Sequence record: MW822008.1
Direction: 5' to 3' (one strand)
DNA: 64,000 nt
Below the pieces are notes generated by a model that was not told the DNA's origin, made no database searches, and worked only from the letters and a program-made list of their open reading frames with translations. Position numbers and translations under genes: made by a program. Each line of letters opens with the position of its first letter. Position 1 is the first letter of the stretch. Of this stretch, positions 43,995 through 62,746 are shown piece by piece.

Positions 43995-44014
43995 CCACCA
44001 GCACAAGCTGGTGG
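43995..44014. other. back-to-back Chi sites CCACCAGC-acaa-GCTGGTGG
   Basis: exact E. coli Chi octamer in both orientations. Confidence 0.75.
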
Positions 44015-44200
44015 ATTCCCTCTAACAGTATTCAGTACTACATGATAGTCTTCATCCTCCTAGGGTAACATAGTGAGGGCTATGATGGCAGTACTGAATA
44101 CTCCCTTTCAAAAGATAGATCTATGGTATAGTACTGACGGATTTTGGGCGTAGTTACCCTGGATGGATTTTGGACGTAGATATGTCTAGCCCTCCAGAAG

Positions 44201-44326
44201 TCTGGAAGTAAAGATGGCTATCCATCTAGACGGCTAAACGGCTAGATTTCTGGATGGCTAGATGGCTAGACGTTTGGACGGCTAAACGGCTAGATGGTTA
44301 CACGTCTGGAAGTATAGACGGCTAAA
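44201..44326 (+). repeat. degenerate 8-bp tandem repeat (GGCTARAY)
   Basis: GGCTA at 44216, 44232, 44240, 44256, 44264, 44280, 44288, 44320, all on an 8-bp lattice. Confidence 0.8.
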
Positions 44327-44490
44327 TCAAAATTTTATTTTGTTTTTCCAATAGTTCCCCTACCGCGTGGGGATAGTTTCCCCGCAGTATCTGGAGTTAG
44401 ATTTTTCTGAATCTGGAATCATTATCTTATAAACTGGGGGCAATGTCAACGACCTGGACGGATATTTTTAAAAATTTTTTCAGTACTGAA

Positions 44491-44541
44491 TTTTGGGCGT
44501 AACTATGCACCCGGTGGGCTTGAGTCTTTCTCGACTTGATG
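44491..44541 (-). ncRNA. putative short RNA unit (CCCANNGGGUGC family), copy 1
   Basis: TTGCTT/TATAAT promoter on - strand, hairpin AGUC-GAGAAA-GACU, CCCACCGGGUGC, no ORF. Confidence 0.45.
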
Positions 44542-44644
44542 GAACTATTATACAGTACTGAAAAAATAAAGCAATACCCTGGAAGCAAAAAAGTTTTAAT
44601 TAATTTGCTTGCTATCCTGGGCCGGACTATGGTACTATATTTCA

Positions 44645-44696
44645 GTACTGAGAAAGTGCGTTTACCTGCTAGGGTGCGGGAGTGTATCCTTTTTTT
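44645..44696 (+). ncRNA. putative short RNA unit, copy 2
   Basis: GUACU-GAGAA-AGUGC, CCUGCUAGGGUGC, 3' hairpin plus U7 tract. Confidence 0.45.
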
Positions 44697-44706
44697 ATAT
44701 CTTGAA

Positions 44707-44756
44707 TTTTGGGCGTAATTTCGCACCCTCTGGGGTTTCCGCTTTCTCGCGTCTAT
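44707..44756 (-). ncRNA. putative short RNA unit, copy 3
   Basis: TTGACT/TATAAT, CGC-GAGAAA-GCG, CCCAGAGGGUGC; convergent with copy 2. Confidence 0.45.
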
Positions 44757-45166
44757 GTAGTAATTATACGCTTTTTCAGGATCAAGTCAATACCTAAAAA
44801 CAAAATAATTGAAAATAATTTAACGCGTTTAAACGGCCCGTAAAGCCCTGGAATGATTGGAATGGTGCAAATGTATAGCTTATGTGTATTAATGCGTTAG
44901 AATGCGTCTGAGGCCGTTTTACGGGGTATGGGGATGATTTGGTGGATTGATTCAGTACTGAATAATAGTACTACTATATAGAAAGATAGTTCCCCTGGAT
45001 GGTTGCAGTACTGAATGATAGTACTGAATAATAGTTCCCCTATATAGAAAGAAAACTATTTTAAAAGTATTTGTAGAAAGTACTTGCAAACTAAGTTTAA
45101 CGGCGTATAATGTTTTACATCGAGAGCGGGAACACTTCCCGCTACATATTACGAGAGATTAAAACG

Positions 45167-45529
45167 ATGGCGACTCAAATCACTAAAATTATTGCTAACC
45201 TGGTTAACTTTCGCGACGAGATGAAAGATCTTCCGGCAGAAACGGTAAAAATTCACATTTCAGCTTATCGGGAACTTATTGCAATGTTACCGCTTAAGCG
45301 TGAACAATACGCCGCGACCGTGATGCTTGATGCGATGATCCATAAGATGATCGCCAGTGATTTAACGATGGTTTATCAGTATATGGGCGAAAATTTCGCG
45401 GTGTATAGTAAACCAGTACCAGGAATGGAAAGTACAGAAGTATTACACGGTTTAAATTTAAAACAAGATGCATGGGATAATATGCCTCGTTTCCTGGTAT
45501 GGGCTGACAGTGGCAAAATTTACGAATAA
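45167..45529 (+). CDS. early hypothetical protein
   Basis: own promoter; true start ATG 45167. Confidence 0.75.
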   Translation: MATQITKIIANLVNFRDEMKDLPAETVKIHISAYRELIAMLPLKREQYAATVMLDAMIHKMIASDLTMVYQYMGENFAVYSKPVPGMESTEVLHGLNLKQDAWDNMPRFLVWADSGKIYE

Positions 45530-45623
45530 GTTTAATAAAGTACTTGCAAACTAAGTTTAAAAGCGTATAATACTTTACATCAGGTGGGGAATAGTTCCCC
45601 ACTATAATTAAGAGATTAATTTT

Positions 45624-45857
45624 ATGAGTACTATTTTAACTGTTTCTCAATCCGTTGCACTGACTGACCTATTAAACGCTTTAAGCCGTTGCACTGAGGT
45701 TGGCTTGTTTGATGTGGTTGACGTTGCACCGGACGTTATTAATCATTTTTGTGATGCGATGGAAGAATGTAAGGAAGATGATAGCCGTATGATGGCGGTC
45801 GCCTTTGAGGAAGTACAGCCGGGTGAGATCAAAGGTTTACCAGTACTGAAAAAATAG
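45624..45857 (+). CDS. early hypothetical protein
   Basis: own promoter, acidic. Confidence 0.75.
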   Translation: MSTILTVSQSVALTDLLNALSRCTEVGLFDVVDVAPDVINHFCDAMEECKEDDSRMMAVAFEEVQPGEIKGLPVLKK

Positions 45858-45939
45858 TACTTGCAAACTAAGTTTAAAAGCGTATAATACTTTCTATCAG
45901 GTGGTGAATAGTTCCCCACTATATAAGAGGATTAAAAAA

Positions 45940-46179
45940 ATGGCTAAATCAAAAATGTTCTTAGGTCACAAAAACAAAACTCATTGGAATGTAAGCCTTT
46001 GGATTAATAACGATGAGTCATTGTACCGGTTGGCCCAGGACTTTATTAATGATAGCACTAATCGCAATGATGCGGCCCGTCATATGATGCTATTTTTAGA
46101 ACAGACTGGACAAGATAAAACACCGGACGGATTCAAATATAGCACTACTGCGATCCGTGCGGCGATGGTTGGAATGTAA
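45940..46179 (+). CDS. early protein, GHKN..WNVSLWINN family
   Basis: paralogue of 47980; GAGG RBS. Confidence 0.8.
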   Translation: MAKSKMFLGHKNKTHWNVSLWINNDESLYRLAQDFINDSTNRNDAARHMMLFLEQTGQDKTPDGFKYSTTAIRAAMVGM

Positions 46180-46265
46180 TAGAATTTATTTAAAGTACTA
46201 TCATTTTTTTGCGATAGTACTTTATAATAGTGTTTTATTCATACACCAACGATAAGGGTAACAGC

Positions 46266-46532
46266 ATGAATATTAAGTATTTTGCGACGCGTGAACAAGC
46301 TCGGATCGCCGCACGCCAGGACGGGGCAACGTTTAAAGATATGGGAGCGGGATCGGCAAGTGGTGAACGTTGGGCCATTGTAAAGCGTAGTACCGCCAGA
46401 TCATTACAGTACTGGTTAGCGGCGTTAAAAAGTCCCGATAGTGTATCGCGTCGAGTGGTAGAAATAAAGCTCGACCGAAAGGGCAACCGCGTGACCGTGT
46501 ACCGTACTAAAAAGATTGCAGTACTTGAATAA
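46266..46532 (+). CDS. early protein, ATRE.AR family
   Basis: paralogue of 58638. Confidence 0.75.
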   Translation: MNIKYFATREQARIAARQDGATFKDMGAGSASGERWAIVKRSTARSLQYWLAALKSPDSVSRRVVEIKLDRKGNRVTVYRTKKIAVLE

Positions 46533-46619
46533 AAAGTACTTGCAAACTATGTTTAATGGCGTATAATGTTTTACATCGAGAGCGGGAACACTTCCCGCCT
46601 ATAACCTGGAGTAATAAAA

Positions 46620-46850
46620 ATGACTAATATGTATATGACTGAAGTTAAAACCGTAAAAGATACTACCACGAATAAAACTACTTACTTACAGCGGATCTGC
46701 GGTGTATGGCAACGTATCAGCAAATCAAAGTACTTTAAATTAACATCATATGCAAACCGTTCGGATTCATTCAGTACTGAAATAAAAGGTAATAAAGTAC
46801 ACCAATACGGCACTTATTATTATTATAGCCTGGACGCGATTGCAGTATAA
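46620..46850 (+). CDS. early hypothetical protein
   Basis: GGAG RBS, own promoter. Confidence 0.75.
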   Translation: MTNMYMTEVKTVKDTTTNKTTYLQRICGVWQRISKSKYFKLTSYANRSDSFSTEIKGNKVHQYGTYYYYSLDAIAV

Positions 46851-46914
46851 GCAGTTTACAAATCTTTACAATTGCCGGTATTGACTTATTTTGTCAGTAC
46901 TGGCATAATGTATT

Positions 46915-46960
46915 CATTGGCAGATAAGCCGTAGCCCATAGGGTGCGGGAGTGTATCTAT
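46915..46960 (+). ncRNA. putative short RNA unit, copy 4
   Basis: TTGACT-17-CATAAT, GGC-AGAUAA-GCC, CCCAUAGGGUGC. Confidence 0.45.
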
Positions 46961-46977
46961 AGAAAAAGTAGTTTATT

Positions 46978-47019
46978 ACAGTTACAATTGTGCACCCGGT
47001 GGGTTAGCTGTTGTCATGG
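46978..47019 (-). ncRNA. putative short RNA unit, copy 5
   Basis: TTGACA-17-CATAAT on - strand, CCCACCGGGUGCA; convergent with copy 4. Confidence 0.45.
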
Positions 47020-47133
47020 GGTATATTATGCCAGTACTTGATAATGCTGTCAATACTTTTTTTACTATTCAGTACTGAAAACTATTTTTAAAAAGTACTT
47101 GCAAACTATGTTTAAAGGCGTATAATGTTTTAC

Positions 47134-47208
47134 ATCAGGACGGGGAACGAAATAAGTAACTCCCCGTTAAGTAGCCCAGGAGTAAGGCACACGAAAAACT
47201 CCCCTGAT
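47134..47208 (+). ncRNA. putative 75-nt structured RNA (three-way junction), copy A
   Basis: AUCAGG/CCUGAU closing stem, ACGGGGA/UCCCCGU, GGAGU/ACUCC; between tandem promoters. Confidence 0.5.
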
Positions 47209-47276
47209 AAAATAGTTTGACAAATGTTTTTAAAAGCGTATAATACTTACATCAACTACTGAATGAGGGTTACAAA

Positions 47277-47888
47277 ATGAAAACTATCACTACTACTACT
47301 TTCGTTATGGATTTTTCTGAATTGAACGCAGAACAAAAAACGTCAGCTATCGAACTGGTTCGGGAACGTGAAAAAAACTTAAACGATGATTATTTTTCTG
47401 AAAGTGAAATTGAATACTATAAAGAAACAGTACTACCGGAATATGGCATTAATGACGCTGATTTACGTTTCAGTGGCTTTTGGTCCCAGGGTGACGGTGC
47501 ATCAATCAGTACTGACCACGTTGACGCAGTGAAGTTTTTACGCAAGGTAAGAGCATTAACTAAGTATCGCTCAATCCGTCACTTGCTGAATGAAGATGAT
47601 TTGGCGATGAGTGTAAAGCGTTCTCACTCCCACTACTCGCATGAAAACACTGTAAGCGGGTACATTGAATCGGCTTACACTGATTTAACCGCAAAACAAG
47701 AAACGTTAGTTAATGAGCTTGAGGAACTACTCACTGAAACTATTCGTGAATTATCCCGCAAGTTGTACCGTGATTTAGAGAATGCATATGAGGATCAATT
47801 CACTACTGAAAACATTACGGCACTGATTGAGGGTAACGAATATCAATTCAATGTTATTGATGGCGTAGTAGAATCAATCGAATATTAA
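47277..47888 (+). CDS. conserved mobile-element early protein (FSGFWSQGDGA motif)
   Basis: motif seen directly; function unknown. Confidence 0.75.
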   Translation: MKTITTTTFVMDFSELNAEQKTSAIELVREREKNLNDDYFSESEIEYYKETVLPEYGINDADLRFSGFWSQGDGASISTDHVDAVKFLRKVRALTKYRSIRHLLNEDDLAMSVKRSHSHYSHENTVSGYIESAYTDLTAKQETLVNELEELLTETIRELSRKLYRDLENAYEDQFTTENITALIEGNEYQFNVIDGVVESIEY

Positions 47889-47979
47889 TTTAAAAAAGTA
47901 CTTGCAAACTAAGTTTAAAAGCGTATAATACTTTATATCGAGGCGGGGAGTGGTTCCCCGCTCAAACGAGGATTTAAAA

Positions 47980-48219
47980 ATGGCTAGTTCTAAAACTTAC
48001 AACGGGCACAAAAACAAAACTCAATGGAATGTAAGCCTTTGGATTAATAACGGTGAGTCATTGTATCGGCTTGCACAAAGTTGTATCGCACAAAGTAGAA
48101 CTAAAGATATTGCAGCGGAATGTATGTACCGCAGATTAAAAGCCAACGGTACTACTACAACGCCGGACGGTTTTAAGTATAGCACTACTGCGATCCGTGC
48201 TGCAATGGTTGGAATGTAA
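47980..48219 (+). CDS. early protein, GHKN..WNVSLWINN family
   Basis: paralogue of 45940. Confidence 0.8.
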   Translation: MASSKTYNGHKNKTQWNVSLWINNGESLYRLAQSCIAQSRTKDIAAECMYRRLKANGTTTTPDGFKYSTTAIRAAMVGM

Positions 48220-48276
48220 TATTCAGTACTGAGATAATGGCGGGTAATAGTTCCCGCCTTTACTGAGGGTTATCTA

Positions 48277-48537
48277 ATGAGTAAAGTAATAAAGTACAAT
48301 GTGTTAAGCAAATCATTGTCTATCAGTGAATGCACCGATGGTTTTTGGATGTACGATGAAACGCGTGGCATGAATTTAGCTATGCGTGCAAAAACTGCTG
48401 AGGCGGCGTATATTCAAGCACTGGAATACTACCAGGAACGTTTAAAGGAAGTAGAAGAAGATTATAAAAGCCTCAAAGCGAAAGTAGATCATTTCGTCGG
48501 TCAATTCATCGAGGAAGACGACGACAAACAATATTGA
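48277..48537 (+). CDS. conserved phage hypothetical protein
   Basis: GFWMYDETRGMNLAMRAKT, coiled-coil tail. Confidence 0.75.
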   Translation: MSKVIKYNVLSKSLSISECTDGFWMYDETRGMNLAMRAKTAEAAYIQALEYYQERLKEVEEDYKSLKAKVDHFVGQFIEEDDDKQY

Positions 48538-48623
48538 AAAAGTACTTGCAATTAGTTTTCAGTACTGTATAATGGTTTACATCAAAGGGAGAAATGGTTC
48601 TCCCTGGTAATGAGGAAAATAAA

Positions 48624-48845
48624 ATGGCTAATATCACTACTCTTTCCCAACTGGAAGCACTGGTTAAATCTATGCGGGAACATGCCGACAAAATCGGCGT
48701 ACAAGATCCAGCCGTTTGCTTCTGCGACGAATTGAATGATGATACCCTGGTAATAGCAGAAGTCCAGGACGTTTCTAACTATTCATCGCGTTACACTGGC
48801 GGCGTAGCAAATAAAGGTGACTTCTGTTTATACCTTACAAAATAA
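48624..48845 (+). CDS. early hypothetical protein
   Basis: GAGG RBS before 48624. Confidence 0.75.
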   Translation: MANITTLSQLEALVKSMREHADKIGVQDPAVCFCDELNDDTLVIAEVQDVSNYSSRYTGGVANKGDFCLYLTK

Positions 48846-48902
48846 CAACGCGGGGAGATAATAACTCCCCGTTACTTTTTCAGTACTGAATCATTTAATA
48901 GA

Positions 48903-48946
48903 CGGATCTATGCACCCGGTGGGTTAGTGACTGTTTCGTCTTGATG
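48903..48946 (-). ncRNA. putative short RNA unit, copy 6
   Basis: TTGACA-17-CATAAT on - strand, GAC-GAAACA-GUC, CCCACCGGGUGCA. Confidence 0.45.
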
Positions 48947-49088
48947 TAGTAATTATGCCAGTACTGGATGCACTTGTCAACAACTATTTTTCAAATACTT
49001 TTTATTAAAATACTTGCAATTAGTTTTTAAACGCGTATAATGTTTTGCATAGGGGGAGCGGTTCCCCTGGTAACTAAGGAATAATAAA

Positions 49089-49325
49089 ATGCTTGAACAA
49101 ATCAAATCAACGTCTTCGAATGTAACGGGAACGGTAGCACACTTTACTAGTGATGAATCGCGGGGCGTTCCCTATTGTGCTGTACATGTAAACACTGAGG
49201 GTAACTACTGGTTTACGGTTTACGGATCATATTCATTTGGACGGCCAGGGCATCAAAAAATTCTGGATAAAGTACAACCAACGGGTAAAAATATCACTGC
49301 TGAAATGTTTTATAAAAAATCATAA
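49089..49325 (+). CDS. early hypothetical protein
   Basis: AAGGA RBS, own promoter. Confidence 0.75.
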   Translation: MLEQIKSTSSNVTGTVAHFTSDESRGVPYCAVHVNTEGNYWFTVYGSYSFGRPGHQKILDKVQPTGKNITAEMFYKKS

Positions 49326-49409
49326 AGTACTTGATAATAGTTTTTAGTACTGTATAATATTTTACATCGCAAGGGGGAGCGGTTCCCCCTGGTAACTAAG
49401 GATAATCAA

Positions 49410-49709
49410 ATGAAAATTGCAATCATCGCCCTGGCTTTATCTGTTTCCTCTTTCGCTGTTAATGCGTCATTAGATGTAAGTAGTGAAAAATTCATTCAGT
49501 GCACTGTTGCAATGACCGATGAAAGTACTGGCGAGATTGTTTTAAAGGATTTAGAGATCCAGCCGGAAGCATTTAAAAACGGGCCGTTCCATGAAGAAGA
49601 CGAAAAAGGTAGCACGACAATTTATTACGATGCAAGTACTAAACGCGGTTCGGTCACTGTTATGGATACTGAGAAAGTAACTCATACTGGCGTTATTAAT
49701 TGCCGTTGA
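49410..49709 (+). CDS. early secreted protein
   Basis: signal peptide, Cys pair. Confidence 0.75.
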   Translation: MKIAIIALALSVSSFAVNASLDVSSEKFIQCTVAMTDESTGEIVLKDLEIQPEAFKNGPFHEEDEKGSTTIYYDASTKRGSVTVMDTEKVTHTGVINCR

Positions 49710-49730
49710 TATATACTACGGGGTAACATC

Positions 49731-49961
49731 ATGACTAAGCGAATTGTTTTACTTAACGAAAGCAGTACTACACAACTACTTAACGCCGTGCATTATGATA
49801 TTGAAACGAGCGTTAATCTTATCAGTACTGTAGTACTGTTGGACACTGGAAAGGTCGCCAATGATAAAGCGATTGCAGGTATACTAACGGATCTTGAGCC
49901 TGGTAGCAGTGCATCAATAACGTTAAATGGTAAAGTGTTTAACATTTTACTTACTGATTAA
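49731..49961 (+). CDS. early hypothetical protein
   Basis: followed by terminator AGCCCAC-CTG-GTGGGCT-T7. Confidence 0.7.
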   Translation: MTKRIVLLNESSTTQLLNAVHYDIETSVNLISTVVLLDTGKVANDKAIAGILTDLEPGSSASITLNGKVFNILLTD

Positions 49962-50078
49962 GTACATAGCCCACCTGGTGGGCTTTTTTGTTTTTGTAGT
50001 ATCGTAGTACTGAGATACTTTGAAAATAGTTTTAAAAAAGTAGTTGACATTACCGCAGAAAAGCGTAGAATGTATTAC

Positions 50079-50151
50079 ATCAAGACGGGGAGCACTAAGT
50101 AGACCGCCAGTAAGTCGAACGAAAAACTGGACACGTCGAGAAAACTTTGAT
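50079..50151 (+). ncRNA. putative structured RNA, divergent copy C
   Basis: CCAGU/ACUGG replaces GGAGU/ACUCC around the same 14-nt AAG..ACGAAAA loop. Confidence 0.45.
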
Positions 50152-50194
50152 ACACTAATAAACGTAAACTAAACTTTAATTGAGGATTTATAAA

Positions 50195-50677
50195 ATGGCT
50201 AATGTAAAATCATTCATCAAAGCACTGGTAGCAAATGAAACTAACGTCGCGGCTGAGATCCTGGCTGAACTGGATAACGATACCATGAAAGCGGTACGCA
50301 ATAATTTTAACATCGCGTACAGTACTGCGAAAGAACTACAAGCAAATAAAGCGGCAGAAATTGAAGCGGCAAAGGCGGCCCGTGAAGCAGAACTACAAGC
50401 AACAATCGAAAGTATTCAGGCGGCAGTAGTTGGATTGGATCTGGAAGTAGTTACAGAGATGGCACAAAAAGCCCTGGCGGTTAAGTATGGGGAAGACAAG
50501 CCAGAAGTAAAAGCCAAAAAATGGATTCAGGAACGCGTAGCGGTAGTACTGGACAACGGGGAAGAATATCTGATTCCGGTGCGTGGTAACTGCATTGCGG
50601 TAGTACTGGACGCGATTAACTCCAGTGGTATGACTCGCGAGGAATGGATCGAAGCTCATCGCAAAGTTGAAGCATAA
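50195..50677 (+). CDS. H-NS-like nucleoid protein
   Basis: coiled-coil AAEIE region and C-domain DNGE....RGN.IAVV.DA...SG.T.EEW aligns with H-NS DENGE...[11 protein letters not shown]...GKSLDDF. Confidence 0.6.
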   Translation: MANVKSFIKALVANETNVAAEILAELDNDTMKAVRNNFNIAYSTAKELQANKAAEIEAAKAAREAELQATIESIQAAVVGLDLEVVTEMAQKALAVKYGEDKPEVKAKKWIQERVAVVLDNGEEYLIPVRGNCIAVVLDAINSSGMTREEWIEAHRKVEA

Positions 50678-50698
50678 CAATTAAAGTACTGAATCACT

Positions 50699-50724
50699 AG
50701 CCCACTTATACAGTGGGCTTTTTT
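50699..50724 (+). terminator. intrinsic terminator
   Basis: AGCCCACT-tatac-AGTGGGCT-T5. Confidence 0.8.
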
Positions 50725-50743
50725 GTGTTTATCGTTTACCAGG

Positions 50744-50813
50744 CCACCAGCACCGCCTAGAAACGATTCTAACGCATTAAACTGATTATCTGATGCATCA
50801 CCCTAGCTGGTGG
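50744..50813. other. inverted pair of Chi sites
   Basis: CCACCAGC 50744, GCTGGTGG 50806, intergenic. Confidence 0.7.
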
Positions 50814-50961
50814 CGTTAAGGTCGTTAGAATGCGATTGAGTGCGTTTAAAGTATTTTACAAAAAGTAATAAAAAGTACTTGCACGATTAAGAGATTAGCG
50901 TATAATGTTTTACATCGAGAGGGGGAAACGGTTCTCCTTCCAAATCAAAGGAATCAAAACA

Positions 50962-51189
50962 ATGGCTATTATCATTACTCGCGTATCTGGTACTACTGGC
51001 AACGAACAAGTAGTTGCAGTCATTACCAACAAGGAAGGTGCGGAATTGCAAAATGCAATGAATACCTGGGCCGTTAATGAGTTCGGTCAGTGGGCAAGTG
51101 TAGCATACATTGAAACCTATCAAGTGCCGTCGATTAGTTTAACTGATTTGGGCGTTGAGCGTATCCTTTGCCTTGATGAATTAAATTAA
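50962..51189 (+). CDS. early hypothetical protein
   Basis: AAGGA RBS before 50962. Confidence 0.75.
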   Translation: MAIIITRVSGTTGNEQVVAVITNKEGAELQNAMNTWAVNEFGQWASVAYIETYQVPSISLTDLGVERILCLDELN

Positions 51190-51275
51190 AAAAGTACTTG
51201 CAAAGTAAATCGAATAAAGTATAATACATTACATCAAGGGGAGAAAATGGTTCTCCCCACTACAAGGAAACTAAA

Positions 51276-51419
51276 ATGAAAACTTGTCAATGTGGTCAGA
51301 AATCTATTACGGGTTTAAAGCGGGGCGTTGCTCTTTGCCAGTACCATTATAATTTACAAGTATGGGGTAAAGAATGGGCCGACCAGGTGGAAGCAGCAAA
51401 GAAAGCAAAAAGTAAGTAA
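51276..51419 (+). CDS. 47-aa Zn-finger-like micro-protein (not in track)
   Basis: CQC...CQYH; own promoter and RBS. Confidence 0.65.
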   Translation: MKTCQCGQKSITGLKRGVALCQYHYNLQVWGKEWADQVEAAKKAKSK

Positions 51420-55140: not shown

Positions 55141-55338
55141 ATGATTAGCATGAAATCAGTACAAAAACAAATAGAAACATTATCAAAAATTAAACGTAAA
55201 CAGTACTCGTTAGAATATACAATCAATGGTAACTATCATCTAATGAAAGAGAATAATTTTATCGTCATTGATGAATCATTGCAAGTTATTAGTATAGTAC
55301 TGAAAGCATTAATTAATGATAGAAAAAAATTAAAATAA
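55141..55338 (+). CDS. hypothetical protein
   Basis: weak RBS. Confidence 0.5.
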   Translation: MISMKSVQKQIETLSKIKRKQYSLEYTINGNYHLMKENNFIVIDESLQVISIVLKALINDRKKLK

Positions 55339-55376
55339 TCTATTGACAATATCCTCCAGTACTGGCATAATACTTA

Positions 55377-55424
55377 CATCAAGACGAGAACGTCACTAAC
55401 CCATAGGGTGCACAAATGTAACTG
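55377..55424 (+). ncRNA. putative short RNA unit, copy 8
   Basis: TTGACA-17-CATAAT, GACG-AGAA-CGUC, CCCAUAGGGUGCA. Confidence 0.45.
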
Positions 55425-55669
55425 TATAATATTGATCAAAAAATGATCTGATCAATACTTGATCAATTTGCGTAAAGTAGTATAATTCTATGCAGTTGGT
55501 TAGACGAAAGGTTATGATTAGTAGTGCAAGTGTATAAAAATTTTCATGGTGTATCGTTCCGCACATATGGCAATGAATATGTGGTATCATGTGGATTGGA
55601 AAAAGTAAGAACAAGTAATATTATTGTCGCATTACAGTACTATAGTATTTTTATAATGAGGTTAAAATA

Positions 55670-55927
55670 ATGGCTGTAGGATTCGCGAAAGATGGGGCCG
55701 AACAAGACGAGATTAACGCAGTGATTCAGGCCGCCGTTAACCACGCTAGAAAGCAAATTAACGCACAAATAGAATCACTGATACATTGCCTCGACTGCGG
55801 CGATATAATCCCTGAGAAACGACGCCAGGCCGTTAAGGGATGTAAGTACTGCATAACTTGCCAGGAGGATCATGATAGTACTTTTAAACGTCCCCCGCGT
55901 AATTGTTGGCATAGATCTATGAGATAA
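55670..55927 (+). CDS. TraR/DksA C4-type zinc-finger protein (YbiI-like)
   Basis: MAVGFAKDG..QD N-terminus; CLDCG..IPE.RR.AV.GC.YC..CQ. Confidence 0.85.
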   Translation: MAVGFAKDGAEQDEINAVIQAAVNHARKQINAQIESLIHCLDCGDIIPEKRRQAVKGCKYCITCQEDHDSTFKRPPRNCWHRSMR

Positions 55928-56002
55928 AAAGTATTGACAGTACTATCCAGTAGTGTTATAGTACTTACATCAAGGGGAAACATCTTCCCCTACTAAGAGG
56001 AA

Positions 56003-56197
56003 ATGAAAATGGAAAACTTATCAAGTATTTTAGTACAAGATGATTTCGGTAATCCTGGAAGTGCTATCATTGTTCGGGGTAATAAAGCAACATTTGTTAT
56101 TGCTGGTGGACCTGTACAGCGTAGCATTAAAAACAATGCCGTTACTATTAATAATGTACGCTATCGCTTAGATAAAGAATTGATTCATAAACTGTAA
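56003..56197 (+). CDS. early hypothetical protein
   Basis: own promoter; contains Chi at 56102. Confidence 0.7.
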   Translation: MKMENLSSILVQDDFGNPGSAIIVRGNKATFVIAGGPVQRSIKNNAVTINNVRYRLDKELIHKL

Positions 56198-56224
56198 TAT
56201 TAATTTAATAGAGGATAACAATAA

Positions 56225-56548
56225 ATGTACATTCATACTACTATCACAAAGGAAGTCCGTTGCCAGTTCGAAAGTATTCCGGGCGTATGTTTCATCACTG
56301 GTACGTTTTCCCCTGGTGATCGTGATAATCCAGTACTGTTACAATTACGCCATCCATCATGGGATAAAGCATTTGATCTACCGTTGAATGAATTCGCAAC
56401 TACTGCTGAAAAGTACATTAAAAATATTCGCGAGAATGATCGACTATTCATTAATGCTTTCAGTGATTCCGCGTTAAGCGAGATCCACAGCGTATTGGTT
56501 GCAATCATGGAATCAATGGAGAAAACTAAATTCAAACAAGGTGAATAA
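56225..56548 (+). CDS. early hypothetical protein
   Basis: GAGGA RBS. Confidence 0.75.
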   Translation: MYIHTTITKEVRCQFESIPGVCFITGTFSPGDRDNPVLLQLRHPSWDKAFDLPLNEFATTAEKYIKNIRENDRLFINAFSDSALSEIHSVLVAIMESMEKTKFKQGE

Positions 56549-56631
56549 AAACTATTGACAAGATAATCTAGTACTGTATAATAAGTTACATGAAGGGGAG
56601 AAATGATTCTCCCCACTGAGAGGAAAGAAAA

Positions 56632-56844
56632 ATGCAAGGTCAACTAATCGTTCGTAAATGGTCTGATACTAACGCTAAACCGTGGGATGTACAATACATC
56701 GGACCGGATGGGGTATCACGTTATCAGCCTGGCGTAACGCATAGTACTGAGCAATATGCCGCCGCTCACCGCGAACGCCTGTTAGAATCCATGAAACAGG
56801 GATACGGTGAAAAATTCATTCAAGATCATTGGCTGAAAGATTAA
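56632..56844 (+). CDS. early hypothetical protein
   Basis: own promoter, GAGGA RBS. Confidence 0.75.
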   Translation: MQGQLIVRKWSDTNAKPWDVQYIGPDGVSRYQPGVTHSTEQYAAAHRERLLESMKQGYGEKFIQDHWLKD

Positions 56845-56861
56845 TATAAGGAGTACAGCTT

Positions 56862-56954
56862 ATGCAAATGAATCCGATGATTATTGTGTTAGCTGTACTT
56901 ATGATCATTCATGCAATAGTAAAAGTATTAACGCAATCAGGAGTAATAAAATGA
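56862..56954 (+). CDS. 30-aa TM peptide (not in track)
   Basis: AAGGAG RBS. Confidence 0.55.
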   Translation: MQMNPMIIVLAVLMIIHAIVKVLTQSGVIK

Positions 56955-57124
56955 TTCAAGTAGAATTATCAGTACTGAAAGATCTGTTTTATCGGTTAGG
57001 TACTACTGGCGAGTATCCTAAAAGTGATACCGCAAAACTTTTTGTATCACTCGACTTATGGCAACGCGAACAATTAGTAATGTCCTGGCGTAAAGGTAAA
57101 GCAGATAGCGAGGTGAAAGCATGA
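56951..57124 (+). CDS. 57-aa protein (not in track)
   Basis: AGGAG RBS, ATGA overlap. Confidence 0.6.
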   Translation: MIQVELSVLKDLFYRLGTTGEYPKSDTAKLFVSLDLWQREQLVMSWRKGKADSEVKA

Positions 57125-57270
57125 AAGAATTCTTATTCGAAGTAGTGTTTCAAGGTGTCGGTAGTAACCAACTGATTCGCTCAAGTGGTTATAATGTTAA
57201 CCAGGCATGGAATAACATTAAACAAATGTACCCGAACGCTATCACCTATCGCAACCCGAAAGAAGTTTAA
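57121..57270 (+). CDS. 49-aa protein (not in track)
   Basis: GAGGTG RBS, ATGA overlap. Confidence 0.6.
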   Translation: MKEFLFEVVFQGVGSNQLIRSSGYNVNQAWNNIKQMYPNAITYRNPKEV

Positions 57271-57283
57271 AAATATTTGAAAA

Positions 57284-57317
57284 AGGGATTGACTCCGGTC
57301 AGTCCCTTTGCTATTAT
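57284..57317 (+). promoter_or_regulatory. fused terminator / sigma70 promoter driving RNA unit
   Basis: GGGATTGAC-TCCG-GTCAGTCCC; TTGACT-17-TATTAT. Confidence 0.75.
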
Positions 57318-57322
57318 ATACG

Positions 57323-57363
57323 CATAGAAACAAATCAGCCCACAGGGTGCATAAATGTATCTA
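57323..57363 (+). ncRNA. putative short RNA unit, copy 9
   Basis: AGAAA, CCCACAGGGUGCA-UAAA-UGUAUCU; Chi at 57370 follows. Confidence 0.45.
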
Positions 57364-57443
57364 TTGTTTGCTGGTGGCTAGTACTGAAAACTATTTTTAA
57401 AAAAGTACTTGCATTGTACTTAGAATCAAGTATAATGTTTTAC

Positions 57444-57516
57444 ATCAGGACGGGGAACGAAACAAGTAACCCCGTTAAGTAGTCCAGGAGTAAGACATAA
57501 GAAAACCTCCCCTGAT
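57444..57516 (+). ncRNA. putative structured RNA, copy B
   Basis: same three stems as 47134-47208 with loop substitutions. Confidence 0.5.
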
Positions 57517-57585
57517 AAAATAGTTTGACAATAGAAAGTAAACGAGTATAATACTTACATCAACCACTGATAAGGAAACATTAAA

Positions 57586-57861
57586 ATGCGGATTCTACTG
57601 ACAGCTAACGAAATCGAACAAGTACTGACTACTAACCTGGAAGACTGGAAACGTGAAGCAGATATCCAGGCGGTTCAACTGCTTAACGATAAGTTAACGC
57701 CGGATGACTTAAGCAAGATTGTAGATCCTCAATTCTACGAAGATATCCACGACACCGCGTTAAGCGTCGAGGATGTACTAGATAAGCACTACATTGATAT
57801 TGATTTGCAGGTTTACGGTCGTAAAAACTTTATCACTATTCACGACATTTATAATAATTAA
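57586..57861 (+). CDS. acidic early protein
   Basis: AAGGA RBS. Confidence 0.75.
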   Translation: MRILLTANEIEQVLTTNLEDWKREADIQAVQLLNDKLTPDDLSKIVDPQFYEDIHDTALSVEDVLDKHYIDIDLQVYGRKNFITIHDIYNN

Positions 57862-57947
57862 GTATTGACAAAGTATCTTAGTACTGTATAATAGTTTACA
57901 TCGAGAGGGGGAATGGTTCCCCTCCTAACAAAGAGAGAGAAATAAAA

Positions 57948-58130
57948 ATGGCTAAATGCACTATCTGCAAGAAAGAAATAGTATTAGTTCCAAGTGCCCG
58001 TGAACGTGCCGCTCGGTTCGGTGGCAAAGCGTCAGACTATACAAAAATGTTTACTACCCATGCAGCTTGCCAGGTAGCAAAACGTTCACAAGAAAGCGTA
58101 GAATTAATGCGTAAACTTTCCAAAAAATAA
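57948..58130 (+). CDS. Zn-finger-like early protein
   Basis: CTIC...HAAC. Confidence 0.7.
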   Translation: MAKCTICKKEIVLVPSARERAARFGGKASDYTKMFTTHAACQVAKRSQESVELMRKLSKK

Positions 58131-58218
58131 GTATTGACAAAGTATCTTAGTACTGTATAATAGTTTACATCAAGTGAGGGGAAACGGTTCCCCTCCTAAC
58201 AAAGAGAGAGAAATAAAA

Positions 58219-58542
58219 ATGGCTATGATCCTTGCCCAGAAAGTAGAACTGAAAATTGTAACCTCCTTTGACATTAAAGTTAATCGGTGGACTGATTCAC
58301 ACGGCAATACTTACCACTCTTGCTACGTGTCCGCGTTAATTGGCGACCGCTGGGAAGACTTGGGACATGAAACCTTTACTTACGGTTACGGTACACAAGG
58401 AGAATACACGGGCTTGGAGATCATTAAAGAAACCGTTATAGGTTTCAACCCGAAAGAAAAAGTTATTCACCGCATCGAAAAAGAGATTAACAAAGAAATA
58501 ACAGTTCGCTACTACGATGTAAAACGTAAGAAAGACATGTAA
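58219..58542 (+). CDS. early protein, RWTDS.GNTYHS family
   Basis: paralogue of 51801. Confidence 0.8.
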   Translation: MAMILAQKVELKIVTSFDIKVNRWTDSHGNTYHSCYVSALIGDRWEDLGHETFTYGYGTQGEYTGLEIIKETVIGFNPKEKVIHRIEKEINKEITVRYYDVKRKKDM

Positions 58543-58637
58543 TAGAATCCATTTAAAGTACTATTTGACATTGCCCAGATAGTACTTTATAATAGACTCT
58601 AACTTGTAGTACTAACTCAACTAATAGGATGTATACC

Positions 58638-59033
58638 ATGATTACTAAATTCTACGCTACCCGTGAAGCTGCCCGTATTGTTGCACGCGAGGAAGGAGCA
58701 GCATTTAAAGACATGGGCAAAGATGCACCGAAAGGTCAACGCTGGGCCGTACAGTTCAAAGAAATCTCTGATATTGTGAATTCACCTGAGCCAGTACTAA
58801 CAGCAGCAGAACTAAAACGAGCGGATTTACTGGCGGCAGTACTTAACGCACAAGATGAATTTATCGCTGATTCTGATATCAAAGTACAGACAAACCATAC
58901 CGCTTGGACTCACGCGGATCACCTGGCAAACCTTAAGCGTCCAAGTGAACTGGTTCGCAACCAGAAAGAGATCCGACACGACCGTAAGGGTAATCGTGTA
59001 ACAGTATACAGTAAACGCCGCCAGGTTATCTAA
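58638..59033 (+). CDS. early protein, ATRE.AR family with internal insertion
   Basis: paralogue of 46266. Confidence 0.75.
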   Translation: MITKFYATREAARIVAREEGAAFKDMGKDAPKGQRWAVQFKEISDIVNSPEPVLTAAELKRADLLAAVLNAQDEFIADSDIKVQTNHTAWTHADHLANLKRPSELVRNQKEIRHDRKGNRVTVYSKRRQVI

Positions 59034-59095
59034 TAACTTGCAGTACTAACAACACGGCGGGATCAGTTCCCGCCTTTTTTATAGGATAAACTAAA

Positions 59096-59350
59096 ATGAT
59101 TAAGGTACAACTATCTAAAGATAATATCTTGCGGGTACACTATAAAGCACCACAGAGAATCATCACAAAGGCCGTACAGCTTGCTAATGAGTTTATTAAT
59201 GGTAACCTATTACCAAGGAAGTTAAGCAACGGAAAACTGCGTGTAATCGATGTAGACACTAACAACAGAATAGTAATTGAGAACACAGGAAAGATAAACC
59301 TATATGAACACCAACAATATAATAAGAAAATAAAACTAATATCACGTTGA
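59096..59350 (+). CDS. ParE/RelE-like toxin-fold protein
   Basis: RKL...LRVIDV...RI...LYEHQQYNK resembles the ParE-like HE.YN motif. Confidence 0.45.
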   Translation: MIKVQLSKDNILRVHYKAPQRIITKAVQLANEFINGNLLPRKLSNGKLRVIDVDTNNRIVIENTGKINLYEHQQYNKKIKLISR

Positions 59351-59403
59351 CAGTACTCAATTGTTTTAGTATTATGTACACATACCAACACGGGAGAAAC
59401 AAA

Positions 59404-59622
59404 ATGAAATTATCTAAAATCGAAAAGAAAACTATTGATGAAGCAGTTAAGCACGGTTATACCTTTCGTAATGATTCACATTTTACCAATTTTCAACAAG
59501 GCCAAAGGACTATTAAAAAACTAATTGACAAAGGTTTATTAGTTAAAGTAGATAACGGTAACGGCATTGAGTATCAGCCAACCCAAGACGCATTATCTTT
59601 AAAGAAATATGCAATTATCTAA
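59404..59622 (+). CDS. early hypothetical protein (possible winged helix)
   Basis: TIKKLIDKGLLVK; own promoter. Confidence 0.65.
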   Translation: MKLSKIEKKTIDEAVKHGYTFRNDSHFTNFQQGQRTIKKLIDKGLLVKVDNGNGIEYQPTQDALSLKKYAII

Positions 59623-59679
59623 TTGACAGTACTCAAATGTTTTAGTACTATATGTACATACCAACACGGGGAAAACAAA

Positions 59680-59922
59680 ATGATTACTTTAGAAAAACGT
59701 ATCAAAGAAACTACATCGCTGGTGGAACTGTTAACAGTACTGAAATGCCGTACTACTCGGTTTAGTACACCGGACTTTATTAATATGGTTGATGTTAACG
59801 GTCGTTATCGCATTGCAGTAGAACATGGAACAGCGAAAGTATTCAGTACTAAAAACACTAAGGAAGTGATTCACGCGGTTAGTGTGAAAAAAGTGGTTGC
59901 CATTGATAGTAAAGTACTGTAA
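59680..59922 (+). CDS. early hypothetical protein
   Basis: promoter duplicated from 59347; Chi at 59718. Confidence 0.7.
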   Translation: MITLEKRIKETTSLVELLTVLKCRTTRFSTPDFINMVDVNGRYRIAVEHGTAKVFSTKNTKEVIHAVSVKKVVAIDSKVL

Positions 59923-59953
59923 GATAGTTTCATTAACTCAAGGAGAACATGCA

Positions 59954-60538
59954 ATGCGTAATTATACTAAATTCATCCGTACCCTGTCAGAAATGGAAAC
60001 CAACAAAGAGATCCTTTCAGCTTGTCGGTTAGCTGGTCTGGAGATCATCGGTGCGGGTTCTTCCCGTATTGTATTCGCTTTAAATGATCGGTTAGTGATT
60101 AAGGTCGCCAATTGTGATGCGGGTGTAGAACAAAATGAAACTGAATGTAAGGTATGGAATTTTTTAGACTATGACCGCCCTCAATTGAAACAGTACTTTG
60201 CAAAGGTGCATATGCATTTATGCGATCCTGATAATATGTTTATCGTTATGGATCGGTTGAGTACTGCAAGCAAAGGCAGTGTAAAGCACGTTAACGCGTG
60301 CAACGAATTAAAGTACAATATTAAACGTAATGCCATTGAACGCCAGCACCGCTTTGCTGATGCACTACAACACGTCGATGATACATTATCAACACTAACG
60401 ATAAGAGATATCAGAAAACAGAATATCGGCCAGGATCGTAATGGACTTATTAAAGTACTTGATTACGGTTTAACCCGCAATATCTGGAATCAGTACTATA
60501 AAAAGCGTGATGTGGCAGCAAGTAAAGTAACACGATAA
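59954..60538 (+). CDS. Ser/Thr protein-kinase-like protein
   Basis: IIGAGSSRIVF, VIKVA, QNETE, DIRKQNIG, KVLDYGL. Confidence 0.75.
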   Translation: MRNYTKFIRTLSEMETNKEILSACRLAGLEIIGAGSSRIVFALNDRLVIKVANCDAGVEQNETECKVWNFLDYDRPQLKQYFAKVHMHLCDPDNMFIVMDRLSTASKGSVKHVNACNELKYNIKRNAIERQHRFADALQHVDDTLSTLTIRDIRKQNIGQDRNGLIKVLDYGLTRNIWNQYYKKRDVAASKVTR

Positions 60539-60552
60539 AAAAGATTAAAAAA

Positions 60553-60585
60553 GGGATTGATTTCGGTCAGTCCCTTTGCTATTAT
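60553..60585 (+). promoter_or_regulatory. fused terminator / sigma70 promoter driving RNA unit
   Basis: GGGATTGAT-TTCG-GTCAGTCCC; TTGATT-17-TATTAT. Confidence 0.7.
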
Positions 60586-60590
60586 ATATT

Positions 60591-60636
60591 CATTGAGAGA
60601 TAGCTCACTGACCCACAGGGTGCATAAATGTATCTA
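60591..60636 (+). ncRNA. putative short RNA unit, copy 10
   Basis: near-duplicate of copy 7; CCCACAGGGUGCA. Confidence 0.45.
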
Positions 60637-60761
60637 TTATATAAGTATTCAGTACTGAAAACTATTTTTAAAAAGTACTTGCATTGTACTTAGAATCAAG
60701 TATAATGTTTTATATCGAGAGGGGGGGAACGGTTCTCCCTCAAAGAATAAGGAATAAAATC

Positions 60762-60983
60762 ATGACTACAATGACTTGCATTTACGCTTCCAATCTTCTG
60801 AATGATGCGGCCTTTAATGTTGATTCAGAATATCAATGTTATCGGGATGAAAATAAAAAAGTTTTTGTAGTTGATAATAATGGTTTCCATATTGAAATAC
60901 AATCCGGCTTCACTGGTGTTGATGGTAAATCAGTATGGGGCGTACAGGATGATAACGGTACATATCATTTTAAACGTAATTAA
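60762..60983 (+). CDS. early hypothetical protein
   Basis: AAGGA RBS before 60762. Confidence 0.75.
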   Translation: MTTMTCIYASNLLNDAAFNVDSEYQCYRDENKKVFVVDNNGFHIEIQSGFTGVDGKSVWGVQDDNGTYHFKRN

Positions 60984-61067
60984 GTATTGACAAAGTATCT
61001 TAGTACTGTATAATAGTTTACATCAAGGGGAGAATAGTTCTCCCCGATACTAAAAGGAAACAAAATT

Positions 61068-61340
61068 ATGTCCAGCTACTCCGCTACTATGATCATTAAA
61101 GATATGAACGGTAATCCTACTTCCGCTGGTGGATCATTTGGAAACATTAATTTAGATGGTCGGTTATCCATGCAATCAGCCATCGATGCAGCGAAAGAAG
61201 TTTTTAAGAATGAATGCACTGTAAGCAAGCTGGATTATATGGGATTCGCTATCGAGAAAACTAATCGTTTTGTGAACTACAAAAATCCACTGATGATTGA
61301 TACTAACCTGAAAGCTAACGAAGTGGAATACTTATTATGA
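61068..61340 (+). CDS. early hypothetical protein
   Basis: own promoter; Chi at 61125. Confidence 0.75.
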   Translation: MSSYSATMIIKDMNGNPTSAGGSFGNINLDGRLSMQSAIDAAKEVFKNECTVSKLDYMGFAIEKTNRFVNYKNPLMIDTNLKANEVEYLL

Positions 61341-61528
61341 CAGTTGAAGAAGTTAAAAAAGTACTGGCAGTACTACGCTATCATAATCATTGCAAGGTGA
61401 AGAATGATCCTGATTATGTTGATTCATCCCTGGAGGAAGACACATTAAACGCAATAAGCCATATGCAAACATTAGCAAAGCGTATGACCGAAAAGAATAG
61501 ACCGGACTATATCGGAAATAAAATTTAA
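61337..61528 (+). CDS. early hypothetical protein
   Basis: ATGA coupling. Confidence 0.7.
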   Translation: MTVEEVKKVLAVLRYHNHCKVKNDPDYVDSSLEEDTLNAISHMQTLAKRMTEKNRPDYIGNKI

Positions 61529-61614
61529 AAAGTACTTGCATTGTAGTTAGATTAACGTATAATGTTTTACATAGAGCGGGGGAATAGTTCTCCCGCCAGT
61601 CCAGGAGATACACC

Positions 61615-61878
61615 ATGAACACTATCGAAATCACTATCAATGCACACGTATACGACAACGTAGTACTGCAAACTACTATGACCGCTAACGATACCAGTAC
61701 TTTGCGGAATACTGTTATTAGTGCCGTATGTGCCGCTATCGGTGATGTCGCCCTGGAAAATGCAAAACACGTAAACGATGGTTTCACTATGTGCAAACGT
61801 GATAACGCAAAACATATCATCGTGGAAGGTTACGGCGGTGTAGAATTTAATGTTTATATGAAAAAAGTACTTGCATAA
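61615..61878 (+). CDS. early hypothetical protein
   Basis: AGGAG RBS. Confidence 0.75.
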   Translation: MNTIEITINAHVYDNVVLQTTMTANDTSTLRNTVISAVCAAIGDVALENAKHVNDGFTMCKRDNAKHIIVEGYGGVEFNVYMKKVLA

Positions 61879-61945
61879 TAACTAAAACAAAGTATAATGT
61901 TTTGCATAGGGGGAGATGTCCTCCCCCACTAAAAGGAGTAATAAA

Positions 61946-62170
61946 ATGGCTAACTTTGATGAACTGATGCGGGAAGTAGCTAACCTGGCAGAAGAGAAAA
62001 AATCATTCGATTCTATCTATAACACCTCTTACCGTGATTCAGTACTGGCATGTAACCAGGATCAAAAAGATGAACTAATCGCCACCTATCATGAAGCATG
62101 GAAGTACTACCGACAATGGGAGAAAGAAGAAAGAGAGTCTACCATTGACGGCCTCAATAATCTAATCTAA
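61946..62170 (+). CDS. early acidic protein
   Basis: AAGGAG RBS before 61946. Confidence 0.75.
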   Translation: MANFDELMREVANLAEEKKSFDSIYNTSYRDSVLACNQDQKDELIATYHEAWKYYRQWEKEERESTIDGLNNLI

Positions 62171-62246
62171 AAGTTTTATTTCAGTACTATTGACATAGCT
62201 TGATAGTACTGATGTAATAACTTTACTAACTACAAGGGGAAACATC

Positions 62247-62504
62247 ATGGAACAATTCACACAATATCGGGTAAATCCTCAAGCTATGGCCTACGTAGAA
62301 GACCATAAAACGTTACCAGTACTGCAACCAGTTAAAGGCCATATCTATCGTGCAATGTCGTGGAGTACGGCCCAGGATGGCTATAAAACCGTAGCCGTTG
62401 GTATGTACTGCGGTAATGGTGAATGGTTTGATCCAAATAATCCGGTAGCCATTGACAGTACTGAAAAAATGAAATGGGCCGACTACATCGAAGATATTTC
62501 ATAA
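62247..62504 (+). CDS. early hypothetical protein
   Basis: own promoter. Confidence 0.75.
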   Translation: MEQFTQYRVNPQAMAYVEDHKTLPVLQPVKGHIYRAMSWSTAQDGYKTVAVGMYCGNGEWFDPNNPVAIDSTEKMKWADYIEDIS

Positions 62505-62519
62505 AAAGAATAAAAAAAA

Positions 62520-62552
62520 GGAGTTGACTTCGGTCCGCTCCTTTAGTACTAT
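62520..62552 (+). promoter_or_regulatory. fused terminator / sigma70 promoter driving RNA unit
   Basis: GGAGTTGAC-TTCG-GTCCGCTCC; TTGACT-17-TACTAT. Confidence 0.7.
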
Positions 62553-62557
62553 ATACG

Positions 62558-62598
62558 CATAGAAACAAATCAGCCCACAGGGTGCATAAGTGTATCCA
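62558..62598 (+). ncRNA. putative short RNA unit, copy 11
   Basis: near-duplicate of copy 9; Chi at 62632 follows. Confidence 0.45.
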
Positions 62599-62746
62599 AA
62601 ATATATAGTTAATAACGGTGAGTAACTATCTGCTGGTGGAACTAAAACTATTAATAAAAAAGTATTGACAAAGTATATCAGTACTGCAATAATGTATCTC
62701 GTAGGGCGGCAATGGTGCGACGGCCCACAAAGTTAGGAGATTCAAA

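Follow-up and report, generated by a model that had tools for sequence, protein, structure and literature searches.

In most accounts Chi marks the bacterial chromosome, and virulent phages are said to block RecBCD by means of proteins. Most of the 50 Chi sites of phage P1 lie within or close to its terminal redundancy, and RecBCD-dependent circularisation of the injected DNA, by RecBCD-RecA recombination between the terminal repeats, has been proposed for it (PMC12315714; Subramaniam and Smith preprint). In LLS-type lambdoid phages many Chi sites are clustered near one genome end and are read as recruiting RecBCD for recombination-dependent growth (PMC12315714). Here we describe ten Chi sites in the terminal repeat of Escherichia phage BF17 (MW822008.1), found in the last 64 kb of its record. 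This 64,000-nucleotide stretch is the DNA that was analysed and is called the window below. With a probability of roughly 0.65, the ten sites are a selected array, confined to the repeat, that lets RecBCD switch to recombination in the repeat instead of destroying the genome.

BF17 is a virulent jumbo myovirus of the genus Asteriusvirus with a record of 383,493 bp. It was identified by megablast with window positions 44000-52000 (100% identity), and the window was then mapped on the complete record, where it occupies positions 319494-383493. Record 1-20590 and record 362904-383493 are the same sequence with 0 mismatches. The genome thus has an exact direct terminal repeat (DTR) of 20,590 bp, with identical sequence at both record ends as in the DTR of RaK2-like jumbo phages, and a unique genome of 362,903 bp. 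The original prediction had spoken of a putative terminal repeat; a DTR of ~20.5 kb has in fact been published for BF17 from its packaging pattern with PhageTerm (PMC10059673). In the close relative fEgEco12 a 20,993-bp DTR was obtained with PhageTerm and confirmed by restriction digests (PMC13070987). The outer 70 bp of the BF17 repeat, both first and last, match the corresponding stretches of fEgEco12, vB_Ec-M-J and G17 almost exactly. Because the repeat edges match in these phages, the DTR boundaries used here are the mapped physical ends of the genus. The mapping of physical ends is that of the published work; the 24 public runs are all assembled Logan contigs of relatives (best word share 0.58) and cannot show ends, and four of them aligned to window 54950-60900 gave neither starts nor ends.

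The DTR contains about 51 small early genes on the plus strand, most of them with their own sigma-70-like promoter, and 39 promoter-like sites are found on this strand. Annotated coding sequences (CDS) make up 64% of the repeat. The exact Chi octamer, 5'-GCTGGTGG-3', is present in ten copies within window 43995-62639. The repeat, its leader and the sites, located by octamer scan, annotation and promoter scan, are as follows.

43411-64000, no strand: right DTR copy, an exact duplicate of record 1-20590 (annotation).
43411-45166, no strand: non-coding DTR leader of 1.76 kb, from the left boundary of the repeat to the first gene, which holds the Chi palindrome; no CDS is annotated before record position 1757 and no long open frames lie around the sites.
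43995-44014, minus (43995) and plus (44007) strands: inverted Chi pair composed of CCACCAGC, a 4-nt spacer and GCTGGTGG, which together make a palindrome of 20 bp in the non-coding leader, at 585-604 bp from the left edge of the repeat.
50744-50751, minus strand: intergenic Chi, the second site facing the left end (octamer scan, annotation).
50806-50813, plus strand: intergenic Chi, paired with 50744 across a spacer of 54 nt (octamer scan, annotation).
55057-55064, plus strand: intergenic Chi overlapping the 3' arm of a terminator-like hairpin (octamer scan, annotation).
56102-56109, plus strand: Chi within a CDS of 62 amino acids, in frame as Ala-Gly-Gly (annotation).
57370-57377, plus strand: intergenic Chi, ~30 bp upstream of a promoter -35 element (annotation, promoter scan).
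59718-59725, plus strand: Chi within a CDS of 80 amino acids, in frame 2 (Ser-Leu-Val-Glu) (annotation).
61125-61132, plus strand: Chi within a CDS of 90 amino acids, in frame as Ala-Gly-Gly (annotation).
62632-62639, plus strand: intergenic Chi that precedes a TTGACA -35 element by 25 bp; among the sites that face the right terminus it is the outermost, at a distance of 1,361 bp (annotation, promoter scan).

The original prediction had placed two octamers on the minus strand and eight on the plus strand, described two pairs as inverted and counted seven sites as intergenic, and each octamer, both pairs and the seven positions outside annotated CDS were found as it had described them.

The number of Chi sites in the DTR is far above expectation. 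Markov models of order 0 to 4 fitted to the DTR itself give 0.19 (order 0) to 0.38 (order 3-4) expected sites, in agreement with the earlier estimate of ~0.2, for ten observed (8 plus and 2 minus), and the ratio of observed to expected is ~26 with models up to order 4. Among the 542 DTR 8-mers with at least five copies, Chi ranks first by this ratio at order 4 and second at order 3. It is also the top word among 168 composition-matched permutations, with 10 copies and a mean of 0.36, and its 24 one-mismatch neighbours have 3 copies together. Seven of the ten sites lie outside CDS although 64% of the DTR is coding (P = 0.028). The ten sites share no common flanking sequence and stand at variable distances from promoters; Chi as a piece of a longer repeat or of a promoter consensus in BF17 was rejected on these grounds.

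The excess is confined to the repeat. The DTR has one Chi per 2.1 kb, whereas the remaining 342 kb have 24, or one per 14.3 kb, a 6.9-fold difference (Poisson P = 3e-6). This genome-wide count, which had been asked for beforehand together with a Markov null, came out on the side of the prediction. Chi is absent from the 39.5 kb after the left repeat and from the 16.7 kb before the right repeat. The whole window has 17 sites, with 0.57 expected from shuffles, and seven of them are outside the DTR. The claim of a single site in the first 18.7 kb and of none at 38-43 kb agrees with what we found (only 9578, and no site in 27.3-43.9 kb); the other six, at 20.1-27.2 kb, were absent from the earlier list. 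These six are all in-frame GCT-GGT-GGN (Ala-Gly-Gly) on the coding strand of open reading frames (ORFs), five of them in glycine-rich minus-strand genes. The same holds for 16 of the 24 sites outside the DTR, which are in-frame Ala-Gly-Gly in long ORFs, and there Chi is one among several frequent words of Gly/Ala codons. From these counts, the excess in the DTR is specific to the exact octamer rather than to codons or a longer repeat, and it ends at the DTR boundaries. An origin of the array by chance or composition is ruled out by these tests.

This arrangement is similar to that of P1, P7 and D6, in which Chi is denser than in the host, present on both strands and concentrated where the packaged DNA ends fall. 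The density in E. coli K-12 is 1 per 4.6 kb (PMC12315714), so the DTR exceeds its host as well as its expectation, and the whole excess lies near the packaged ends. However, P1 is temperate, has a genome of ~95 kb and is packaged by the headful mechanism from pac with variable redundancy, whereas BF17 is virulent, a myovirus of 363 kb whose 20.6-kb repeats are fixed and exact, and it has an array that ends at their boundaries and its own RecA/UvsX-like system. The LLS class is defined by the absence of phage recombination genes and by a strong, cos-set orientation bias. BF17 has recombination genes and a composition-like strand ratio, and its ends are cos-less with long repeats. A conserved Chi palindrome near one terminus sets BF17 apart from both P1 and LLS. 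Long exact terminal repeats full of small early genes are also known in T5 (its first-step-transfer DNA) and in Herelleviridae (phage K and SPO1), phages that, like their hosts, are unrelated to BF17. The SPO1 record has a single, unannotated repeat copy, and the Chi of B. subtilis has only 5 nt.

Staphylococcus phage K (Kayvirus, KF766114.1), with an annotated terminal repeat of 8,486 bp (1-8486), provides a cross-host control. Were the octamer enriched for reasons that have nothing to do with RecBCD, a phage of this kind, on a host with another Chi, would not be expected to enrich the word of that host. Its repeat is saturated with host Chi as is the BF17 DTR. The S. aureus Chi GAAGCGG occurs 40 times, all in the two repeat copies, with 20 per copy (13 plus and 7 minus) and 0 in the 131-kb unique part. 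In the repeat, the runner-up among composition-matched words reaches 3 copies, and the GAAGCGG sites are without common flanks. When the words are swapped, the phage K repeat has 0 E. coli Chi and the BF17 DTR has 1 S. aureus Chi. Phage K thus carries the Chi of its own host in its repeats, which ties the word to RecBCD/AddAB and is the strongest argument for reading the octamers as Chi. Since the enriched word tracks the RecBCD/AddAB signal of the host, the DTR sites are very likely under selection as Chi. The T5 repeat is not significantly enriched; in T5 (AY543070.1) two plus-strand Chi, at 8127 and 8689, fall in the 10.2-kb repeat and four in the remaining 101 kb, a 5-fold difference in density with P = 0.06 on few sites. 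The inverted GAAGCGG pairs of phage K at 4595/4615 and 6235/6246 form hairpins.

Chi-rich repeats or regions are found in relatives of BF17, as counted below on the plus and minus strands.

fEgEco12 (Escherichia): 10 plus and 2 minus in the DTR.
vB_Ec-M-J (Escherichia): 9 plus and 2 minus in the DTR.
G17 (Escherichia): 9 plus and 1 minus in the DTR.
fENko-Kae01 (Klebsiella; 19.7-kb DTR from PhageTerm): 12 plus and 2 minus in the DTR.
CBB (Pectobacterium; 22.5-kb DTR): 7 plus and 2 minus in the DTR.
Munch (Salmonella): 11 plus and 2 minus in the first 21 kb.
GAP32 (Cronobacter): 7 plus and 2 minus at 6-23 kb.
RaK2 (Klebsiella): 10 plus and 1 minus at 222-244 kb.
fHe-Yen9-04 (Yersinia): 6 plus and 0 minus at 2.6-12.8 kb.

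In fEgEco12, vB_Ec-M-J, G17, fENko-Kae01 (Kae01 below) and CBB the DTR is 6.7- to 12.6-fold denser in Chi than the remaining genome of the same phage (P from 1e-5 to 2e-11). Kae01 has 14 sites in the DTR and 18 in the other 321 kb, and CBB has 9 and 20, the latter in 333 kb. These two are distant from BF17: Kae01 has an average nucleotide identity of ~29% to Asteriusvirus (PMC13070987), and alignment of the repeats to the 20.6 kb of BF17 covers 3.6 kb in Kae01 and 1.2 kb in CBB, in short promoter-like stretches only. Their repeats have diverged from BF17 yet are filled with Chi, and therefore the array has been maintained or re-created.

Within the genus, all ten BF17 sites have positional equivalents in fEgEco12, vB_Ec-M-J and G17. 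The sole exception is 50744, which is kept in the first two and has one mismatch in G17. Nine of the ten octamers are invariant in the four Asteriusvirus genomes, whereas this holds for only 32-84% of the 8-column windows around them; a simulation with one pair counted twice gave P = 0.02, which is modest support. The three other Asteriusviruses keep the inverted pair of the leader at 578-600 bp. It is also kept, at 484-503 bp and with different flanks, in Kae01 and Munch, which also have a minus-strand Chi at distances (7,013 and 7,138) like that of BF17 50744. The outermost right-facing Chi is 1361-1362 bp from the terminus in all four Asteriusviruses examined. The arrangement at 55057, with ccactggttaac followed by Chi, is seen in Kae01 at 19354. 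The spacer of the palindrome (window 44003-44006) is ACAA in BF17 and vB_Ec-M-J, its reverse complement TTGT in fEgEco12 and G17, and TTAA in Kae01. The ACAA/TTGT swap is probably the signature of a hairpin-mediated flip of the palindrome.

Chi acts only on RecBCD that approaches from its 3' side (PMC12315714). In BF17 each site has a double-strand end on this side, with eight sites facing the right terminus and two the left. The plus-strand sites are 1,361, 2,868, 4,275, 6,623, 7,891, 8,936, 13,187 and 19,986 bp from the right terminus, with 44007 the innermost Chi of the right DTR copy. The minus-strand sites are 585 and 7,334 bp from the left terminus, and the nearer one (43995 in the right copy) faces RecBCD entering at the left genome end. 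If each Chi is recognised with a probability of 30-40%, the eight right sites would intercept 94-98% of the enzymes. The octamer, the 3'-side rule and the expected consequence for linear ends are the same as where Chi shields rolling-circle plasmids or lambda red gam DNA from RecBCD. Such cases are the product of engineering or mutation and have one or a few Chi, whereas the BF17 clade has a natural, conserved array.

The original prediction held that a sequence serving as both genome ends needs Chi in both orientations. The two orientations are similarly enriched over their own expectation (plus ~25-70-fold, minus ~20-50-fold) and sites face both termini, which agrees with this part of the claim, but the 8:2 ratio is explained by composition and adds nothing to it. 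Composition-matched G-rich words are 82% on the plus strand of these repeats. The ratio as a sign of design was ruled out, because such words are equally skewed; no orientation bias beyond composition of the P1/LLS type is found, and orientation lends no independent support.

A mechanism may be proposed from the enrichment of the sites, their confinement to the repeat, their conservation and host specificity and their positions relative to the mapped ends. Virion DNA is linear, and host RecBCD would load at either end and degrade into the repeat. The repeat information is present twice, and loss of one copy from an end would be tolerable. RecBCD from the right end would meet eight correctly oriented Chi within 20 kb, the first 1.4 kb in, and RecBCD from the left end would meet two, of which the nearer is 585 bp from the terminus. 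On recognising a Chi inside the repeat, the enzyme would spare the 3'-ended strand and load RecA. Being repeat sequence, the resulting tail would have a homologous partner and, coated with RecA, could invade the other repeat copy or the repeat on a sister or co-infecting genome. Strand invasion would then give a circular genome or a primed, concatemer-forming replication fork. Confinement of Chi to the repeat fits this model, since a RecA tail from unique sequence would be without a partner in a single infection. Less degradation would also leave fewer fragments for CRISPR spacer uptake. The recombination step is held more tentatively than the array itself, and we would place it somewhat short of even odds.

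T4 gp2, lambda Gam and Mu Gam deal with the same problem, linear phage DNA exposed to RecBCD, by a protein rather than by a DNA signal. The original prediction had proposed that Chi works with or instead of an inhibitor of the Gam/gp2 type. No match to T4 gp2 (protein and phrog_429), lambda Gam (PF06064) or Mu Gam (PF07352) was detected in the BF17 record, with T7 gp5.9 and P22 Abc2 not searched. The 51 DTR proteins compared with PHROGs and Pfam gave no known RecBCD inhibitor, and nearly all matches were families of unknown function; such blank results are not proof of absence. Single DTR proteins match a DksA/TraR zinc finger (window 55670-55927), a ParE-like toxin domain, DUF7249 (two) and DUF7247. 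Several of the 51 small CDS (window 45167-63848) encode very acidic proteins with isoelectric points of 4.1-4.5, and the product of 53884-54225 has 23 acidic and 4 basic residues. DNA-mimic inhibitors are often very acidic.

Several points weigh against the array acting through RecBCD-promoted recombination. The plus-to-minus ratios, 8:2 in BF17 and 27:6 over three lineages, are at the composition baseline of 82% plus (P = 0.59). The left end is guarded by two sites only, with ~50-64% recognition at the same per-site rate. BF17 also has a RecA/UvsX-like gene of its own, a RecA-family ORF of 389 amino acids at record 228.5-229.3 kb (PF00154, 54.8 bits summed), and UvsY-like and gp46/47-like genes are annotated in fEgEco12; the phage recombination module that LLS phages lack is thus present. 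With these RecA/UvsX-, UvsY- and gp46/47-like genes, loading of host RecA is not obviously needed. About 87% of BF17 proteins are unannotated, and a RecBCD inhibitor or an end-binding protein among them may make Chi irrelevant on entry. Several Kae01 sites stand in promoter spacers, where some role in transcription is possible. Finally, the action of RecBCD on the ends in vivo, its timing (incoming DNA or later ends) and the recombination outcome are what we infer. The further suggestion that the phage mimics host self-DNA draws on a notion, 'mimicking self', that is disputed (Subramaniam and Smith preprint).

The own recombination genes speak for the view that the sites serve for protection only. 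Here Chi would attenuate the RecBCD nuclease, sparing the ends and the early genes and leaving few fragments for CRISPR adaptation, and the repeats would be joined by the phage system of the UvsX/UvsY/gp46-47 type rather than by host RecA that RecBCD has loaded. The confinement of Chi to the region nearest the ends agrees with this, and in work by Levy et al. in 2015 and Modell et al. in 2017 Chi reportedly bounds spacer acquisition from DNA ends. However, RecA loading is part of the same post-Chi switch of RecBCD, and phage recombinases are absent at the moment of DNA entry. Smith and colleagues argue that Chi is a recombination signal rather than simple protection (PMC12315714; Subramaniam and Smith preprint). 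We consider protection without recombination unlikely.

About as unlikely is a late-stage role as in lambda and LLS phages, with Chi acting on ends made by replication or packaging (rolling-circle tails, terminase cuts), one of them occluded by terminase and the other open. In lambda and LLS phages packaging polarity determines which orientation is active, and the sites are grouped at the open end (PMC12315714), and the majority orientation in BF17 faces one end. This majority is, however, explained by strand composition, and the minus-strand site 0.5-0.6 kb from the left terminus is kept in two genera, which suggests that both ends matter. RecBCD activity may also be gone by late infection, through an inhibitor or host DNA breakdown.

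Some sites overlap signals for transcription. In addition to the terminator arm at BF17 55057, Chi is found inside promoter spacers at Kae01 3711, 9192, 16840 and 18721 and CBB 21020, and four of these five end 2 nt before the -10 hexamer. These positions may be free to vary, or the sites may have a second role in transcription. One could go further and suppose that the octamer serves another reader altogether, for instance a DNA-binding protein of phage or host or an element of promoters or terminators, and that its identity with Chi is coincidental; the left-terminus site is a perfect palindrome, as is common in protein-binding sites. Most Chi have no fixed position relative to promoters or genes, three are inside CDS, one-mismatch variants are nearly absent, and the repeats of phage K enrich a different word that is the Chi of its own host, all of which make such a reader very improbable. 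Chance, base composition, codon usage or the copying of a longer repeat, for which speak the G-rich plus strand, the mostly Ala-Gly-Gly sites outside the DTR and the GGT and GCT words common genome-wide, are of negligible probability given the 26-fold excess over Markov models to order 4, the top rank among composition-matched permutations, the seven of ten non-coding sites without common flanks and the recurrence in unrelated repeat sequences.

A virulent jumbo-phage clade and, independently, a Staphylococcus myovirus place the host Chi almost only in the repeat that forms both of their ends. Host-specific Chi arrays may be a general, convergent trait of long terminal repeats in virulent phages, RaK2-like jumbo phages of Enterobacterales with GCTGGTGG and phage K of Staphylococcus with GAAGCGG. 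The repeats would be expendable substrates, armed with Chi, through which RecBCD/AddAB changes from a defence to an initiator of circularisation or concatemer replication, even in phages with their own recombinases. We regard this generalisation as nearly an even chance. If it is true, repeat-confined word enrichment could reveal unknown host Chi from phages. Long terminal repeats would gain a concrete, testable function as expendable buffer and recombination substrate, and the idea developed for P1 and LLS would extend to lytic phages with their own recombinases. In phage therapy, the recBCD/recA status of the host could affect the efficiency of jumbo phages, and the Chi array may limit CRISPR spacer acquisition from phage ends. 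In the searched literature, which included few subscription journals, we found no report of the GAAGCGG array of the phage K repeat, no paper on Chi in jumbo-phage (RaK2-like) or Kayvirus repeats and no experiment on the RecBCD/RecA growth dependence of any RaK2-like phage. The fEgEco12 paper discusses circularisation through the repeats and does not mention Chi and RecBCD (PMC13070987).

Other features were observed in the window. On the minus strand, 20681-28668 is a tandem array of seven genes of 245-405 amino acids, with RCC1 repeats in two of the three scanned. One member (26669-27406) is 28% glycine, and five of the codon-driven Chi fall in the array. In the DTR there are 36 copies of the palindromic octamer CAGTACTG, and the other 342 kb have 190, with ~4 expected from base composition (an estimate). 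By its distribution, CAGTACTG looks like a genome-wide regulatory or binding motif. AGTACT is also part of AAAGTACTTG, an upstream element of early promoters that is found 16 times in the DTR and 5 times elsewhere. Window 54950-60900 is covered piecewise by contigs from pig, cattle and chicken gut and wastewater metagenomes, which join at promoter-like repeats; the letters between the contig joints include AAAGTACTTGCACAGTACTG. Across the sequenced Asteriusviruses 22-66% of the repeat aligns, and together with the piecewise contigs this indicates that early-gene cassettes of the DTR are shuffled between relatives at shared promoter elements.

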